This document shows, in pieces, positions 45,532-53,860 of a DNA stretch of 64,000 nucleotides. This stretch comes from Paramoeba atlantica. Its lineage: Eukaryota; Protista; Discosea. Within the stretch, counting starts at the first letter, position 1. Each line of letters starts with the position of its first letter. Below the pieces are notes generated by a model. That model was not told the DNA's origin. It saw only the letters and a program-made list of their open reading frames with translations, and ran no database searches. The stretch lies in contig CDRNVI010000026.1 of the NCBI GenBank assembly GCA_977017575.1, forward strand, positions 248,001 to 312,000. The letters are read 5' to 3'. The translations under genes and the position numbers were made by a program.

Positions 45532-45855
45532 CGGAATACAAAATCGTAAGTAAGACACCCGTCTCTAAATACAATACTACTATTGTAGTACACCCCCGCG
45601 CAAATGTGTTATAATTTATTAGTATCGATCACGATTTTTGGAATCTCTTTCGGGTTCCTGTCATTAGTACACGAGAAACCTTGAAGACTCAGCGACTTGC
45701 GAAGCGTATCCAACTACACTTCAGTACTTATCCAAATATCAGATATTCATTTGGAAACGTAATGTAGCTCTAAAGTTTATATAATCAAAACTAGGAGCTT
45801 ACCGTGTTAGGTGACTCTTATTGTAGTACTAATTACTGCTTTCAGTGTATTTCAA

Positions 45856-46563
45856 ATGAATGCAGCACCACCCAAACGACGTAAGTTGGGAAAAGTCAGC
45901 ATGGCTTCTCTCCCTCAAGAAGCAGAAATGGAAAGATTTTTAAGGGATATGTCTAGGCCACAAGGCTTCCAATGGAATTTTACTGCCTCGCCTTGCACAT
46001 GGAGAGGTGTAGAGTGCGATTTTCGGAACCAAATACGTCGTATAGATTGGTCTAACCTTTCACTCCTTGGCCAGCTGAACTGGAAATATACCCCTCGCAA
46101 CCTGCACTCTTTCAAAGCCCACAACAACCAGATCCACGGCATGCTTGTTTTAGATTTGCTACCTAAAGGGCTCCGCTTGATAGATTTAACAAAAAACGAC
46201 CTCATGAAAACATTAAACTTGTCCAACTTGCCCGAGAATATCCGCGATGTTTTTCTAGGAAGAAACTCATTTTCCGGACCCATTGACTTAACTGCTCTCC
46301 CCTGTTCGCTACAATGGCTATCGCTTCAGTACAACCTCTTCAACGGGGAGCTCGATCTCACTCACCTTCCAGAGAATCTACAAGCTCTGCGTTTAAACAA
46401 CAATGAATTTGTCGGCAGCGTTGCTCTCTCTGCTCTTCCCCGATCGCTTACTGAGCTCACTTTGGATCACAACAAACTGACTAAAATTCCGGACACCTCT
46501 TGTATGCGGCGACCTCTAGAAAACCTAACTTATTATATGAATTATTTTGAAACGGAGTCTTAG
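45856..46563 (+). CDS. LRR protein, paralog 12
   Basis: PPKRRKLGKVSMASLPQEAEM motif (NLS-like basic patch) and PCTWRGVEC cap. Confidence 0.85.
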   Translation: MNAAPPKRRKLGKVSMASLPQEAEMERFLRDMSRPQGFQWNFTASPCTWRGVECDFRNQIRRIDWSNLSLLGQLNWKYTPRNLHSFKAHNNQIHGMLVLDLLPKGLRLIDLTKNDLMKTLNLSNLPENIRDVFLGRNSFSGPIDLTALPCSLQWLSLQYNLFNGELDLTHLPENLQALRLNNNEFVGSVALSALPRSLTELTLDHNKLTKIPDTSCMRRPLENLTYYMNYFETES

Positions 46564-46668
46564 AAAAACAAATGGTGAAAGTCAAGCATTATTTCACAAA
46601 ACAAACTTTTTTTTCTCATTTGATCATATTTTACTCGCAAAGTGTTTTTAGGATATTTTTCGCATATA

Positions 46669-47421
46669 CAGTGGTGTTCAGCGTCTTTTGCCCCCCCTAC
46701 AGGTCTTGTATTTTGTCCGATTTTGGAAATATTTGGTATACCACCGTTTTTCGACCCAATCGTTCCGAATCCGAAGTCCTTTTCACTCGAGCGACCCCCT
46801 ACCCCCCTAGCCAGGTAGGGGTCAAAAAAGCTAATTACAACTTTTTTGGGTTCATTTTTTTGAATATTTCGGATGAGGAACAGCAATAAAGTAGGTCAGA
46901 AGACGTGGAAAAAGAGTGCAAAGTAATCTCTAGTATTTAGTCATATGCACTTTAGTCTCCTTGACCAAAAGAAAACGTTTACTATAGTCCCGGAAGGCTT
47001 TCTTAAACGTTTCTGGTTAATCTTCAGAAAAAAAAGCGAAAAGTTTCAATGATGGACCCGGGGCTAAGTTTATAAAGTTCTTCGAGTGTCTTATAGAACT
47101 TAAGTCGCTTTCAATCGATCGCGAGTGCCGTGCGCATCTCGGGGCACACGAGGCAGGAAGGTAAGCACACGGGGCAGTGCTTTTTCGTCATGAATCACCA
47201 ACAAGTGTACCAATTATAAAAAAAATGTACTCTGTGAAAAAAAAATCGACTTTTTTGCATTTTGTTTTCCGGTTTAGGTGTGATACAGGTGTCCACGAGT
47301 GAAAAGGACCTCGGATTCGGAACGATTCCGGTCGAAAAACAGTCCCATACAAAATATTTCCAAAATCGAACAAAATGCAAGACCTGTATGGGGGGGGGGT
47401 AAAAGAGGCTGAACACTACTG
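46669..47421. mobile_element. Non-autonomous Tc1-like element, 753 bp, ~125-bp TIRs
   Basis: TA|CAGTGGTGTTCAG ... CTGAACACTACTG|TA. An internal minus-strand remnant resembles a transposase C-terminus. Confidence 0.8.
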
Positions 47422-47843
47422 TATTTTATTTGCACTATTCTCGATGGATTGCTTGTTTTTCTCCGATTTCGAATGTACAGATAGTATTAGCTATATTGTG
47501 CTCGCCCGCGCCCACAAAAATTGTCTTTGGCATTCAAAAAAATGCCTTTTTTTCTTCCCGAAAATTGGCTTTGACCAAACAAATTTAAAATATGGATAAA
47601 AAAGATGCACATTGTTTTACGTTTTTATTTGTGCCAATATGGTTAGATTCACAGTGTTGTATTTGAGGTTTGCGTAATAAATTATTTCTTTCTCTGTATT
47701 ATTGAAACAGTCTCGTTTCAGTTTTTTGCTTAGAAAGTTTTAGCTGTTGAAAGCACAGTTCTTGTGTGCTACTCAACAAGCTCACCACGGACCAGTTTAC
47801 TGAATGTTAATTTGAAGACTACGCTTCGATAAATCTAGTTCCA

Positions 47844-48842
47844 ATGTCGCCTTGGGTACTCTACAACCCCTCCACGTGCATTGTGCAAATTAAAATAGCG
47901 CTTGACGGCCTTAGCCCACCGATCTGGCGACGCGTGCTGATGGATGACTACGACTCACTCGGTGTTCTCCATGAGGTCATTCAACGTGTAATGCCTTGGA
48001 ACGACGGCCATTGTCATTGTTTTACTATCCTAAATGAGTACTACGAGCGCAATCCAATGACCGAAATCCGTGAGGCGAGACGTGAGGAAGATTACATGCT
48101 TCAAACGGTGATCTCATGGGGGGTGAAAAAATTTAAGTACTCGTATGACTATGGCGATTCTTGGGAACACACGATTGAGATTGAAAAAACCCTTCCGATG
48201 GATCCCTCTCTTCGCTATCCGGTCTGCATAAAGGGGAAATATGGATGTCCTCCGGATGACTGCGGGGGTACCGATGGGTACATAGGTATGCTCCAAACAC
48301 TGCGCGCACCGGGTGATTCAGAGGAAAAACAAGAATATTTGGAATGGTTGGGGGGGCCCTTTGATCCGTTTGTATTTGACATGGACCAGGCGAATGAGCG
48401 CCTGGAAGAACTTCGGCCAAGGCGACGTGCTCCCAAAGAATCTGGCCCGAAGAAAACAAAGTCCACCACGTCTGGAAAGAGCAAGCTCTCGAAGAAAGGC
48501 ACACAGACCAAAGAGAAGCAGTCCGATGAAAAGGTAAAAGGCAAGAAAAATGTGAAGGCAACTAAAACGAAACCAAAAGCAGGTGAAAAGGCTAAAAATG
48601 TCGAGAAAAAGACGACAACTGCGTCAAAGGGAAGGGCCAAAAAGACAAGCACGACTTCCAGTACACAACAGAAAGCGAAATCGAACAAGAAACGGGAGAG
48701 CAAGCCCAAAACGAAGAGGGGAAAAGCGAGTACCGTTGGTAAGCGCGAACGCGTAGAACGTAAGCAAACGGCGGCGCAGAAAAAGAACTCGAAAGTGAAG
48801 CGAGTTTCTTCCAGCATTAAAAAGGGCACTTCACGGAAATAA
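47844..48842 (+). CDS. pRiA4b ORF-3-like (MM3350-like) domain protein with Lys-rich H1-like C-terminal tail
   Basis: QIKIALDGLSPPIWRRVLM, LHEVIQRVMPWNDGHCHCF, YSYDYGDSWEHTIEIE, YPVCIKG..GCPPDDCGG..GY, EWLGG.FDP..FD: canonical motifs of the family. The last ~140 aa are K/S/T/R-rich. Confidence 0.85.
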   Translation: MSPWVLYNPSTCIVQIKIALDGLSPPIWRRVLMDDYDSLGVLHEVIQRVMPWNDGHCHCFTILNEYYERNPMTEIREARREEDYMLQTVISWGVKKFKYSYDYGDSWEHTIEIEKTLPMDPSLRYPVCIKGKYGCPPDDCGGTDGYIGMLQTLRAPGDSEEKQEYLEWLGGPFDPFVFDMDQANERLEELRPRRRAPKESGPKKTKSTTSGKSKLSKKGTQTKEKQSDEKVKGKKNVKATKTKPKAGEKAKNVEKKTTTASKGRAKKTSTTSSTQQKAKSNKKRESKPKTKRGKASTVGKRERVERKQTAAQKKNSKVKRVSSSIKKGTSRK

Positions 48843-49343
48843 TTTTTACACTTCTTTTTCAAGCATTTCTATATTTTTCTGTACAGTACAGTATAAGTTT
48901 AGAGGTTTTATATAGTAGTAGATTTAATACTTTAGTGGCCTATAGCATAGTTTACCTACCCTGTAGTAACCTAGTACAGGTAAGCACGATAGGTATTTAT
49001 ATCATAGGACCTCACGGGTCTATTTTGAGCTTAAAAAGATTGTTAGAGTGAGAAGGGCACAACACTCCTTGTTGGAAACGATGTCATTCTTGAAAAGAGG
49101 AAAGACCAAAACAAGGAAAAGAAATAAAATCGCGGAAGACGTCTACTGAAACGCGTTTTCTTGACAGAATTTCATGAAAGCGTAGTGTTGAGCTTTCACT
49201 GGCAAACATCAGACATATTAAATTGTTGTACGCATCATAAAAACATTTTAAGCACAGGCGTACATCTCAATACCCAAATAATCAACCAAATAGTCAACAC
49301 CTCTTTCAAAAACGATTAAAAGGTTTCTATTATCACTTCTGCT

Positions 49344-51020
49344 ATGCATTTTATACCCTCTTTTTGTGACGATGCACAGCCACCGTCACGGCGATCTTCT
49401 TCACCCGGATTACACAAAACACCTGCTACTGCTGTTGGCAAAGTTCACTCCTACGCCCTCCCGGTGGTATACGACCTCGCACGTCTGGTGGAACACATCA
49501 GCAACCCCCACCCCTCGTGGACCTTAGAGACGCCCCCCTGTTCGTGGGATGGGGTCACGTGCGATCCCCCCACCGGGGCTGTCACGGAGCTGCGCTGGAT
49601 GGATCGCGGATTACGTGCGAGAAATTTCTCCCTGCAACATCTTCCTCGTACGCTGCATCTCGTGGATCTCTCTGGCAACAATCTACGGGGTACGGTGCTG
49701 CTGAACGCGCTGCCAGATACCTTGCGAGAGCTTGTGATGGACAGAAATCTTTTGCATGGCGAAATCGATTTGTGTGACCTTTCGGAGGCCTTGGAACGGT
49801 TGAGCTTGGCGCATAACCAGTTTCAGGGTTCCGTAGAACTTGCCTCACTTCCTCCTCACTTGCGTATTCTGTGCTTAAATGAAAACGCGTTCGAGGGAGA
49901 AATTGCTTTGGGGAAGCTCCCTAATACGCTCGAAGGCATGGATCTGTCGGAGAATCAATTCCATGGGACCTGCGTACTTGATATGTTTCCTCCTTCTCTT
50001 AAGAGTTTGAGACTAAGCAAAAATAAATTGTCGGGCAATTTGTATTTTGAAGCCCTTCCGCGCGGACTCGAGGATCTAGTGATCAATGAAAATAAATTTC
50101 AAGCAGAATTAAAATTCCAGAACTTACCTCCCGCACTCCGTTGTCTTCAATTGGAAAATAACCAATTTTCGGGTCACATTGACACGTCAAGTTTTCCGAA
50201 TGAAATACAACTTGTTTTACTGTACAGCAATCTCTTTACAGGGCAGTTTCTTTTTGAATCCCTTCCTAATTTGCAGTATCTTTCCCTCGCGCATAATAAA
50301 GTGACAGGTAAAGTGCCTCCTAATGTACCTCTTCCGGAGGTTGAAATGCTAAACCTCCATAAATGCGATTTCGAAGGTCCATTCGATATGACGACTCTCC
50401 CGCCCACCTTGAAGTTCTTACTTCTCTATGGGAATCGCTTTGATGGACAGCTCGACCTAAATCATTTGCCGTTGGAGATACAGATGCTCAACGCGGCACA
50501 TAACCAGTTTACTGGGTCTATTTCCTTGGACCAACTACCCGTTGGATTGAACGAACTACGCCTTGGGGGTAATAATTTAGATGGTACGCTGCTGCTTACG
50601 CACCTTCCAGACTCCTTGGAGCATCTTCACCTGCAAGAAAATTTATTTACAGGAGAAATAGATCTTTCTGCGCTTCCTGAGAGGCTAAAAAGTGTACGAC
50701 TCCATCAAAATGCGCTCACAGGAGCTGTACATAGTGAGAATCTCCCAGAATCTCTCGAGGAATTATCCCTTCATAGTACTTTCCTCCACGTATGCATCGA
50801 CAAATATCACCATCCCCCCAATCTGGATATTTCCCCAATCTTGGAGACCACCGTTTGGGTATTAGACAAAGCGGGGAAGGTGTGCCGCGTTCCTTTCAAG
50901 GGTTCTAAACACTGCTTAATGGTATGGGATGTGCAAGGCTCCAGCACTGCGGAAGAAATACAGCATCGGTACGGTGAGTTCCTTTTTGATCAAGATTACG
51001 TGGAAGAGGAAGCCCTGTAG
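49344..51020 (+). CDS. Long LRR protein (~17 repeats), paralog 13
   Basis: GKVHSYALPVVYDL motif, W..ETPPCSWDGVTC cap, long 23-aa repeat array. Confidence 0.9.
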   Translation: MHFIPSFCDDAQPPSRRSSSPGLHKTPATAVGKVHSYALPVVYDLARLVEHISNPHPSWTLETPPCSWDGVTCDPPTGAVTELRWMDRGLRARNFSLQHLPRTLHLVDLSGNNLRGTVLLNALPDTLRELVMDRNLLHGEIDLCDLSEALERLSLAHNQFQGSVELASLPPHLRILCLNENAFEGEIALGKLPNTLEGMDLSENQFHGTCVLDMFPPSLKSLRLSKNKLSGNLYFEALPRGLEDLVINENKFQAELKFQNLPPALRCLQLENNQFSGHIDTSSFPNEIQLVLLYSNLFTGQFLFESLPNLQYLSLAHNKVTGKVPPNVPLPEVEMLNLHKCDFEGPFDMTTLPPTLKFLLLYGNRFDGQLDLNHLPLEIQMLNAAHNQFTGSISLDQLPVGLNELRLGGNNLDGTLLLTHLPDSLEHLHLQENLFTGEIDLSALPERLKSVRLHQNALTGAVHSENLPESLEELSLHSTFLHVCIDKYHHPPNLDISPILETTVWVLDKAGKVCRVPFKGSKHCLMVWDVQGSSTAEEIQHRYGEFLFDQDYVEEEAL

Positions 51021-51070
51021 AAAAAAACTTTTAAGAGGCGAACGCACAGCAAAAAAATCGGCTACAGACT

Positions 51071-53860
51071 ACTTATATTGTACCCATATGATATTTTTAC
51101 TGCTTTTTCCACTTTTTACCCCCTTTTCGTCTATCTTAGCATTCAAATCAAATCAACAAACCTTGAATCACACCCCAATCTTCACTCTCTTCTTCAGAGT
51201 CATCTTCTGTCTCTTCATTGTCGTTGTCTTCGTCCCTTTCTACTTCTTTCCTTTCCACTTCATCTTTTACGGACTTCAGAGCCAACAAAAGAGCGCGGAA
51301 GCGTTCTTGCCAGCTTGCGTTCTTAAAAAACAGCGTGTACAATGAAACAACTTCATCAGCCTTATGCGGATGCATTGAGAGTCTTCCTTGCTTTCATATT
51401 CCCCTCTTTACAGAAGAGTGGCACGACTCGGCATTGTTCGTATGTATTCCCTCCTTTGTAACAAAACGATATTTACCTTTTGTGCTATGGTTCACGACTC
51501 GATGATCTCTTACGGCATTTAATCCACGGTACGCCCGCCAAGCATCTGTGTTTACGATCGTGCGGTAGCTGTCCACTGTGTGCTTTTTCACAAAATTTTG
51601 TAAAGTAGTCCTGTCCCTTTTTTCAACGCGCTTCCATACAGGGGGGGCCACGAAAACTGACAAGGTCCGCATTTTAGCGTCCTGAGGCAGTTTGAGCTGA
51701 TTTTTGTTGCAAACGAGAGATCTCGTTCTGAATATCGTGTCTACGCTATTTAAAATACAAAAACGTTCGCCGGAAAACATTTCCAATGAGTTACAAAAGT
51801 GAAATTTTAAAGATTTTGCAAATTGAAAAACGGGTCTAAAATTCGTAATTTTTAGCGTACGTACCACGGCCCAAAAAGTACCCAGAAAGTAGGTCTTAAT
51901 AGCCAGTATTCCCACCTCCACGCTCACGTAGTATAGCGAGGCGCGTGGGAAGACTCTTTAGCGTATTCACATACGCCTCGTGACATTCGTTCAACAAATA
52001 TTCCTTGGCCTTTGGAATAGCCGCTTGTAATTCTTTTCGATTCTGTGGACCGAGATGGCTGTGGATGTACTTATCCATCATACTCCACAAATTCTCAATC
52101 AAATTGAGATCAGGAGATTTCGAAGGCCAATCAATAATTTTGATGTCTTCCAACTATTCTCCTGGCTTCCCCATGCCCTGGGCGTTGTCAAGGATAATTG
52201 TAGCCCCGGGGCGGCGATGCATCCAGTTGAAAAACCCATTTCGTTTTTTCATTGCATTCAAAAAGACCTCATTTGTAACAGTTTCATTTTGTGCGAACTC
52301 ATGGAAACACGCATCAGGCACTTCCCAACGGAGACTGGTGGCCATGAATACATGAACTCCTTTCCCCCCATACCACCTATCTAATTGTACTGGTGTTTCC
52401 TTGGGGGGGTCAGTCATTTTTGCAAGGTACGTATTTTTTTGTGATCCGCATCGAAAGATTTTTTCGTTGCACCACACAATACGAGACAGCTGATCTGGGC
52501 TGAATCCCTCAAAGTAATCAGCAAGTTGTAGTCTAGCAGCCTTGTGCTCAGCTGTTAAAAAAGGCTTGTGCGACATCGTCTTAATGACGTATCCCATCTT
52601 TTTCAAACTCCGTTTCACGGTGTTTAGATTACATGGATAAAGTACTTTATCCACTCTCTTATGTACCCATTTAAACCCCGGACACCCGAATTGTGTGTCT
52701 CGCTCAGCATCAACAATAGCACAGAGCATGGCTCGGAACTCCTCCGTATCAACGCCGTTATCGCGCGAGTAGGGTGCACTTGCCACGTCACCTGACTCAT
52801 CGAAACGCGCTTTGTACCGAGAGACAGAGCTCTCTGAACAGTTCATCATACGTGCCGTATCCGGAATAGATGTCCCACGGTGTCTTTCGTGTGCGCAGAC
52901 AATGCGCACAGGATATGAACACTGTTCTGGTGATAGCTGGCGACGGTTTAGTCTATTCCGTTTGCCCATAGTAAGGTAAAAAGAAGAAAAAATAGCCTTT
53001 TTTACGTTTTTCGATACTTTTTGCAAAATATTTTGCCCAAAATTTCAATATTTTGTAAATATATTTTTTTTTATTAGCAGAAACGGGCTCCAAATAGCGT
53101 AGACACGATATTCAGAACGAGATCTCTCGTTTGCAACAAAAATCAGCTCAAACGGCCTCAGGACGCTAAAATGCGGACCTTGTCAGTTTTCGTGGCCCCC
53201 CCTGTATAGTACGGCCACAACTACCATCTCTTTCGATCCCAGTAATTGTAGCCATGTAAAAAGATCTTTTTCTCACTCGGCATCACCGATGATACTTCCG
53301 TGGAAAAAGATAGGTTTCATCAACTGCGCACCTAGAGAGCTTGATTTCCTCGTTGCGTTTCAGTACGGCCTTATGAATCCATAGCAGAAGTTGTTTTTTC
53401 CATTTGAAAACAGTACGTCGGGCTACCTTACACTGTGAGGCCAGACTTGCCATTTCGACCCGTTGACAAAGTTTGATCCAAAACATGAATTTCATTTCAG
53501 GCTTTTTTGTTTCGAAGAAAAAAAAGGTGCGAGCCTAGTAAGGCGTTTCCTGCATTTAGCACCACAATTTCTGCGCCAGCAAATGGACAATGAGGGATTC
53601 GACTTGTGAGGAGTGCCAGGTAATTTATGTGTAGGGCATTTATCTTGTCGCACTATTCCATGAGATACCAGGAAAGACACAAAATTATCAGGGATATCTC
53701 CAGCATGCTTGAATCGGAGAATGCACCGAAGATCGGAACGAGCATTTATTGGACAAAAATATGTAGGATAGATGTACAGAGCCAAAAAATTAACATTAGC
53801 AAAAAGATGCGACAAAATACAAAAAAAATAAAAAAACCAAATTTTGGGTACAATATAAGT
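51071..53860 (-). mobile_element. Merlin element interrupted by a Tc1-like insertion
   Basis: 16-bp TIR ACTTATATTGTACCCA / TGGGTACAATATAAGT. Transposase motifs AVDETYLFPRKYHR, NTDAWRAY, VVNH, GIHTNNAES. The frame rejoins across the TA site (GSCGRTI|WKRVEKRD). Confidence 0.85.
51639..53204 (-). mobile_element. Tc1/IS630-like element (1566 bp, ~112-bp TIRs, TA TSD) with inactivated transposase
   Basis: TA|CAGGGGGGGCCACGAAAAC ... GTTTTCGTGGCCCCCCCTG|TA. The ORF has an HTH, KPFLT..HK..RL, WCNE (first catalytic D changed to N), LDNA, a stop at 52154-52156 and WPSKSPDLNLIENLW. Confidence 0.9.

Follow-up and report, generated by a model that had tools for sequence, protein, structure and literature searches.

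The structure closest to the protein described here is that of MM3350 from Methanosarcina mazei (PDB 2I1S), a tail-less, stand-alone archaeal protein of 188 aa. In bacteria, the same PF07929 domain is a module of multi-domain proteins that are often encoded on mobile DNA, as in TnpR of IS1096, and NCBI labels members of the family 'IS1096 element passenger TnpR'. The tnpR gene of IS1096 is dispensable for transposition (PMC5681481). The fusion partners in 108 longer relatives are SEC-C (14), TPR (6), DUF7309 (5), DUF6930 (4), UPF0149 (4), HTH (2) and resolvase (1), and a cluster of 56 Chloroflexota proteins in the ESM Atlas combines LexA_DNA_bind with PF07929. A literature search for PF07929, MM3350 or pRiA4b ORF-3 in eukaryotes returned nothing relevant. 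Highly basic, lysine-rich and disordered segments are known from linker histone H1, the H1-like proteins of trypanosomatids and the kinetoplast-associated proteins. H1 tails are rich in K, A and P.

Here, we describe a eukaryotic gene that joins a complete PF07929 domain to a polybasic tail. It was found in a window of 64,000 nucleotides, the whole stretch of DNA that was analysed, from an assembly of Paramoeba atlantica. Perkinsela endosymbionts live in Paramoeba species (PMC5601477), and the CDC48 protein encoded in the window has its best named match in Perkinsela sp. CCAP 1560/4 (75% identity); the trypanosomatid proteins are 69-71% identical. Based on these identities the host is a kinetoplastid, but only a distant relative of Perkinsela sp. 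CCAP 1560/4. The gene is genuine: it is expressed and is present as a single copy in the nuclear genome of this kinetoplastid, whose nearest named relative is Perkinsela and which comes from a Paramoeba atlantica culture. With it, a known family gains an architecture and a host lineage that are both new. Its features are:

47816 to 47817, plus strand: putative AG trans-splice acceptor, placed by a contig of run X4 with spliced-leader-like letters
47844 to 48842, plus strand: complete coding sequence, 332 aa and stop, from the listing of ATG-to-stop open reading frames
47880 to 48386, plus strand: PF07929 (PRiA4_ORF3 / MM3350-like) domain, aa 13-181, by Pfam search (E 4.5e-53)
48414 to 48839, plus strand: polybasic K/S/T/R-rich tail of 142 aa, aa 191-332, predicted to be disordered from its composition and the AF2 model
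48843 to 49062, plus strand: 3' UTR, reaching at least to 49062, from transcript contig L001

The earlier note had placed the N-terminal ~190 residues in the pRiA4b ORF-3 / MM3350 family, and the Pfam search bears this out: PF07929 is matched with 179.9 bits (cut-off 26.6) over model positions 2-172 of 173. Pfam finds no other family in the whole protein, and no NCBIfam model matches it. In an alignment of the protein with 119 close relatives (A1, 120 sequences), 15 of the 15 invariant columns are retained (R29, L39, W52, H56, Y99, Y101, D102, G104, D105, W107, H109, E114, P136, P137 and G141), and the family motifs WRR, GWxDxHLH, YDFGDxWxH and CPPEDCGG are all present. The last of these, in the form CPP[ED]DCGG, puts the protein in the same subfamily as its bacterial neighbours. 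An AlphaFold2 (AF2) model built on this alignment has a pLDDT above 95 over aa 11-190 and superimposes on 2I1S with a VIA Z of 24.4 and an rmsd of 1.7-1.9 over 172-174 aa (Foldseek E 1.6e-18; TM 0.87, normalised by the 2I1S chain); by sequence, 2I1S is matched with E 8.9e-27 at 32% identity. The domain is a complete MM3350-like/PF07929 domain with a ubiquitin-like beta-grasp core and a helical extension, and it shares both fold and family with MM3350. A difference is seen at three positions, where MM3350 has V, A and S, whereas our protein and its nearest relatives keep H109, C135 and C140. Of the histidines and cysteines, the domain of our protein retains H56, H58, H109, C128, C135 and C140. 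The segment aa 1-190 is acidic, with a pI of 4.57 and a net charge of -15.

Unlike MM3350, the protein has a tail. The C-terminal ~140 residues had been described as rich in K, S, T and R; indeed, aa 191-332 contain 29.6% K, 12.7% S, 12.7% T and 8.5% R, next to 7.0% A and 3.5% P, which gives a pI of 11.55 and a net charge of +45. In the AF2 model this part has a pLDDT of about 50 and no secondary structure. The tail contains no internal repeats and has K[KR]x[KR] at aa 203, 291 and 300. Not one of 270 relatives has a comparable lysine-rich tail, the ESM Atlas feature search gave no usable match to it, and the word-indexed sequence search gave none. The architecture, a folded domain followed by a polybasic tail that is predicted to be disordered, is seen in no relative examined and is new. 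The comparison with histone H1 drawn in the earlier note, however, holds in part only. Judged by composition, the tail is H1-like in its lysine content and charge, but it is poor in A and P, unlike H1 tails, and the S/TPxK motif is absent. The protein also differs from H1 in having no winged-helix domain (PF00538), and it has no HMG domain; Pfam finds PF07929 alone.

The gene had been described as intact, on the strand of the gene cluster and between eukaryotic genes, and this description is correct. It sits on the plus strand between two LRR genes at 45811-46563 and 49344-51020, both of which encode an LRRNT_2-type N-terminal cap and FNIP/LRR repeats. The other genes of the window on this strand encode CDC48, an M16 peptidase, a MIF4G/MA3 protein, a pseudouridine synthase and LRR proteins; in fact, all open reading frames of at least 200 aa with recognisable domains are on the plus strand, with the exception of one transposase relic. 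This relic, on the strand opposite to the gene cluster at 52154-53026, is an open reading frame of about 290 aa in which only the Tc1/Tc3-type helix-turn-helix is matched (HTH_Tnp_Tc3_2, HTH_23/28/29). Logan contigs of four runs were aligned to window positions 45600-51400. In two DNA samples, overlapping contigs lead from the gene into the LRR gene downstream of it, and the gene is as deeply covered as its single-copy neighbours. The upstream LRR gene has about twice the depth of the other flanks, a hint that this LRR family has several copies. Both the GC3 of the gene (0.53) and the correlation of its RSCU with the other open reading frames of the window (0.47) are within the host range. Directly upstream of the gene is an element of about 760 bp (46666-47424) with 129-bp inverted repeats at its ends (46666-46789 and 47296-47424, 87% identical). 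Its contig depth in run X2 is about 13-87x that of the flanks and, therefore, it looks like a high-copy MITE-like element. An Rfam search of the window found nothing.

That the gene is expressed, which the earlier note had left to be checked, is evident from two sources. Contig L001 (1262 nt) of JGI sample 3300017035, a transcript from the MMETSP culture of Paramoeba atlantica, spans the gene and is colinear with window positions 47801-49062 apart from one mismatch; it shows no intron, and its product (P0001) is identical to the window protein. In run X4, a 2015 run that is probably RNA, coverage is confined to the upstream LRR gene and to 47817-48901, and the intergenic regions have none. Here, the coverage of the gene begins with spliced-leader letters, in line with the spliced leader that the earlier note had in mind: the X4 contig matches the window from 47817, and the 12 non-matching letters that precede, CTGTACCTTGTT, are similar to the 3' end of a retro-copied spliced leader at 2176-2213 of the window (...GTTTCTGTACCTTATTG). 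They are also similar to the Perkinsela SL primer ...GTTTCTGTACTTAATTG (PMC5601477). Based on these 12 letters of one low-depth contig, the AG at 47816-47817, 26 nt 5' of the ATG, is the putative trans-splice acceptor. In the X4 contig the body of the mRNA starts at 47818, which leaves a 5' UTR of 26 nt that contains no upstream start codon; contig L001 starts 16 nt upstream of the putative trans-splice site. The leader tail of the mRNA contig, CTGTACCTTGTT(G), differs by one base from the retro-copied leader in the window, CTGTACCTTATTG; either the leader exists in variants or the retrocopy has mutated. A further Paramoeba atlantica sequence, the EukProt protein of MMETSP0151_2 (P0121), is 97% identical to the window protein. 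The sole difference is a local frame slip at aa 124-132 (window about 48213-48230) that turns RYPVCI into PLSSLSGLQ and eliminates the near-invariant P126 and C128. The DNA contigs aligned to the locus do not show the slip, which is therefore probably due to misassembly.

Runs X2 and X4 also contain a second version of the locus. The X2 variant has eight coding substitutions, of which seven are synonymous and one is F176Y, and the end of the variant transcript in X4 adds three further substitutions, all synonymous, as well as a 6-nt deletion that stays in frame and replaces VKR by G. Altogether, the two versions are separated by 10 synonymous changes, one conservative change (F to Y) and one in-frame indel. 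This excess of synonymous changes indicates that both halves of the gene are under purifying selection. In the tail, six out of six substitutions are synonymous, next to the in-frame 6-nt indel, and the tail is therefore constrained coding sequence and not a read-through artefact. The variant gene carries a variant of the downstream LRR gene as well; hence, it is an allele or a strain variant and not a dispersed paralogue.

Where does the domain come from? In a word-indexed search of 5.8 billion clusters, the protein itself was followed by matches of at most 49% identity. The named near relatives among the best 120 of these matches belong to Anaerolineae, Verrucomicrobia and Methanosarcinaceae, and no relative among these 120 was sourced from EukProt. 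An exhaustive HMMER search with aa 1-190 against 1.84 billion representatives detected 14,094 family matches at E <=0.001, none of which exceeded 48% identity; taxa were inspected for the best 120-150 matches. The gene neighbourhoods of four close relatives are typical prokaryotic contigs. A single-protein scan of GTDB gave six loci, the best in a metagenome-assembled genome of the Planctomycetota (43%), and 153 viral contigs in IMG/VR encode the family (best 44%). No close kin was found in JGI metagenomes. The prokaryotic type of the domain is thus supported, the best relatives being at most 49% identical and of bacterial, archaeal or phage-borne origin. A grouping with vertically inherited euglenozoan homologues, which would speak against a transfer, was not seen: among the matches listed, no euglenozoan relative groups with the protein. 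On the horizontal acquisition proposed in the earlier note, the distribution of the family and the phylogeny have to be distinguished. In a FastTree phylogeny of 270 domains the terminal branch of the protein has a length of 1.13 (median 0.51), and in an IQ-TREE LG+C20 tree of 88 rows a length of 0.83 (median 0.32); in both it falls into no supported clade. Horizontal acquisition is the best reading because of the distribution of the family, but the trees give neither donor nor direction.

Taken together, we think it probable that the gene was acquired laterally, a long time ago, from a prokaryote or its mobile element; the tail may serve the protein as a polyanion tether, perhaps in the nucleus or nucleolus. 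A PF07929 gene would have moved long ago from a prokaryote, or a prokaryotic mobile element, into the kinetoplastid lineage, where its codon usage would have adapted to that of the host and its reading frame would have been lengthened by the 142-aa disordered polybasic tail. The tail would tether the protein non-specifically to a polyanion, DNA or RNA, and would carry basic clusters of the nuclear-localisation type. The acidic folded domain would then make the specific contacts to protein, ligand or DNA, by analogy with the bacterial winged-helix (wHTH) fusions. A transfer as such comes as no surprise, since the presence of bacterial genes in kinetoplastids is well documented.

An old transfer has to be weighed against vertical inheritance, in which PF07929 was present in the euglenozoan or eukaryote ancestor, was lost almost everywhere and persists here as a fast-evolving relic. 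The long terminal branch, the missing support for a bacterial sister group and the fully host-like codon usage would be expected of such a relic, and its orthologues could be missed, since this part of the kinetoplastid tree is poorly sampled. However, 1.84 billion representatives contain no relative above 48% identity, and the CPP[ED]DCGG motif is shared with the subfamily of the bacterial neighbours. EukProt does not appear in the best 120 matches, although the same collection yielded CDC48 proteins of Perkinsela CCAP 1560/4, of trypanosomatids and from EukProt transcriptomes. We therefore regard a vertical relic as unlikely. A different question is where the protein acts. A tail with a net charge of +45 could also condense kDNA, in analogy to the kinetoplast-associated proteins (KAPs) or histone H1, and there would be no lack of substrate: a passage in one paper gives the DNA content of the Perkinsela mitochondrion as larger than that of the nuclear genome of host or endosymbiont (PMC4669381). 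But the N-terminus, MSPWVLYNPSTCIVQI, fits poorly, as the first 16 aa contain no basic residue and the first beta-strand of the domain begins at aa 12, and the 26-nt 5' UTR without an upstream start codon would leave no space for an N-terminal extension. The A/P richness and the S/TPxK motifs of H1 are missing from the tail, and Pfam finds neither an HMG box nor a linker-histone domain. A kDNA-condensing protein is, in our view, quite unlikely. With no obvious mitochondrial presequence, binding of kDNA is less likely than a nuclear role or some other role in polyanion binding, and judging from the sequence the nucleus or nucleolus is a likelier putative site than the kinetoplast.

Two explanations remain. 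Bacterial members of the family ride on IS1096, as their NCBI name says, and this genome is rich in transposons, with the high-copy inverted-repeat element directly upstream of the gene and the Tc1-type transposase relic at 52154-53026; the gene could thus be, or could until recently have been, the cargo of a transposable element. Unlike its relatives on mobile DNA, however, the kinetoplastid gene has no adjoining transposase and carries the lysine-rich disordered tail. The pair of inverted repeats closes upstream of the gene, which itself has no flanking repeat. Its depth is that of single-copy neighbours, the second copy has the same downstream LRR gene, as expected of an allele or strain variant, and the synonymous excess of 10:1 points to a gene selected by the host. 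We consider a passenger of this kind very unlikely and, based on linkage, depth, spliced-leader and allele evidence, have rejected transposon cargo as an explanation. Given a prokaryotic family, one also has to think of a bacterial gene misplaced in a eukaryotic contig, by contamination or as an assembly chimera, a possibility that the earlier note had already discounted. The probability of such an artefact is close to nil: the contigs of two DNA samples tie the gene to an LRR gene at single-copy depth, a transcript with spliced-leader letters spans it, its codon usage is host-like, the polybasic tail is absent from bacterial relatives and two haplotypes exist. Linkage, depth, spliced-leader letters, alleles and codon usage all led us to reject this explanation, too.

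A separate lead comes from the structural comparison. In an exhaustive comparison with 48,161 PDB representatives, human SNAPC3 (SNAP50), a DNA-binding core subunit of the snRNA-activating protein complex, is the only structure besides 2I1S to reach a Z of at least 8. SNAPC3 has a Z of 8.1 in this comparison, and other SNAPc entries raise the score to as much as 8.9, with 148 residues aligned. The alignment covers model residues 4-179 at 17-18% identity, and the remaining structural matches are generic ubiquitin-like beta-grasp folds with a Z of about 5. The likeness is one of structure alone, as neither Pfam (no match to PF12251) nor a PDB profile search connects PF07929 with SNAP50 by sequence or profile, and we take it as a lead and not as a classification. 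SNAPC3 differs from our protein in its two zinc fingers and its long insertions (PMC9758055). According to the model, a relationship between PF07929 and the SNAP50 core is conceivable. It is tempting to go further and to regard PF07929/MM3350 as what corresponds in prokaryotes to the DNA-binding core of SNAPC3/SNAP50, and the kinetoplastid copy with its tail as a sequence-reading chromatin or transcription factor, but this is a highly doubtful proposition. If it were true, it would be the first functional handle on a family of more than 14,000 members without known activity, and the resemblance deserves a proper test of its own.

Returning to the probable old transfer from a prokaryote or its mobile element, the gene would illustrate on a small scale how a gene can change once it has arrived in a new host: here, a domain would have been joined by a new tail that is predicted to be disordered. 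At the same time, it is a clean case of a eukaryotic gene, expressed and under selection, that belongs to a very large prokaryotic family with no known function. Since the host is a eukaryote, a first clue to the function of PF07929 could come from tagging and localising the protein.
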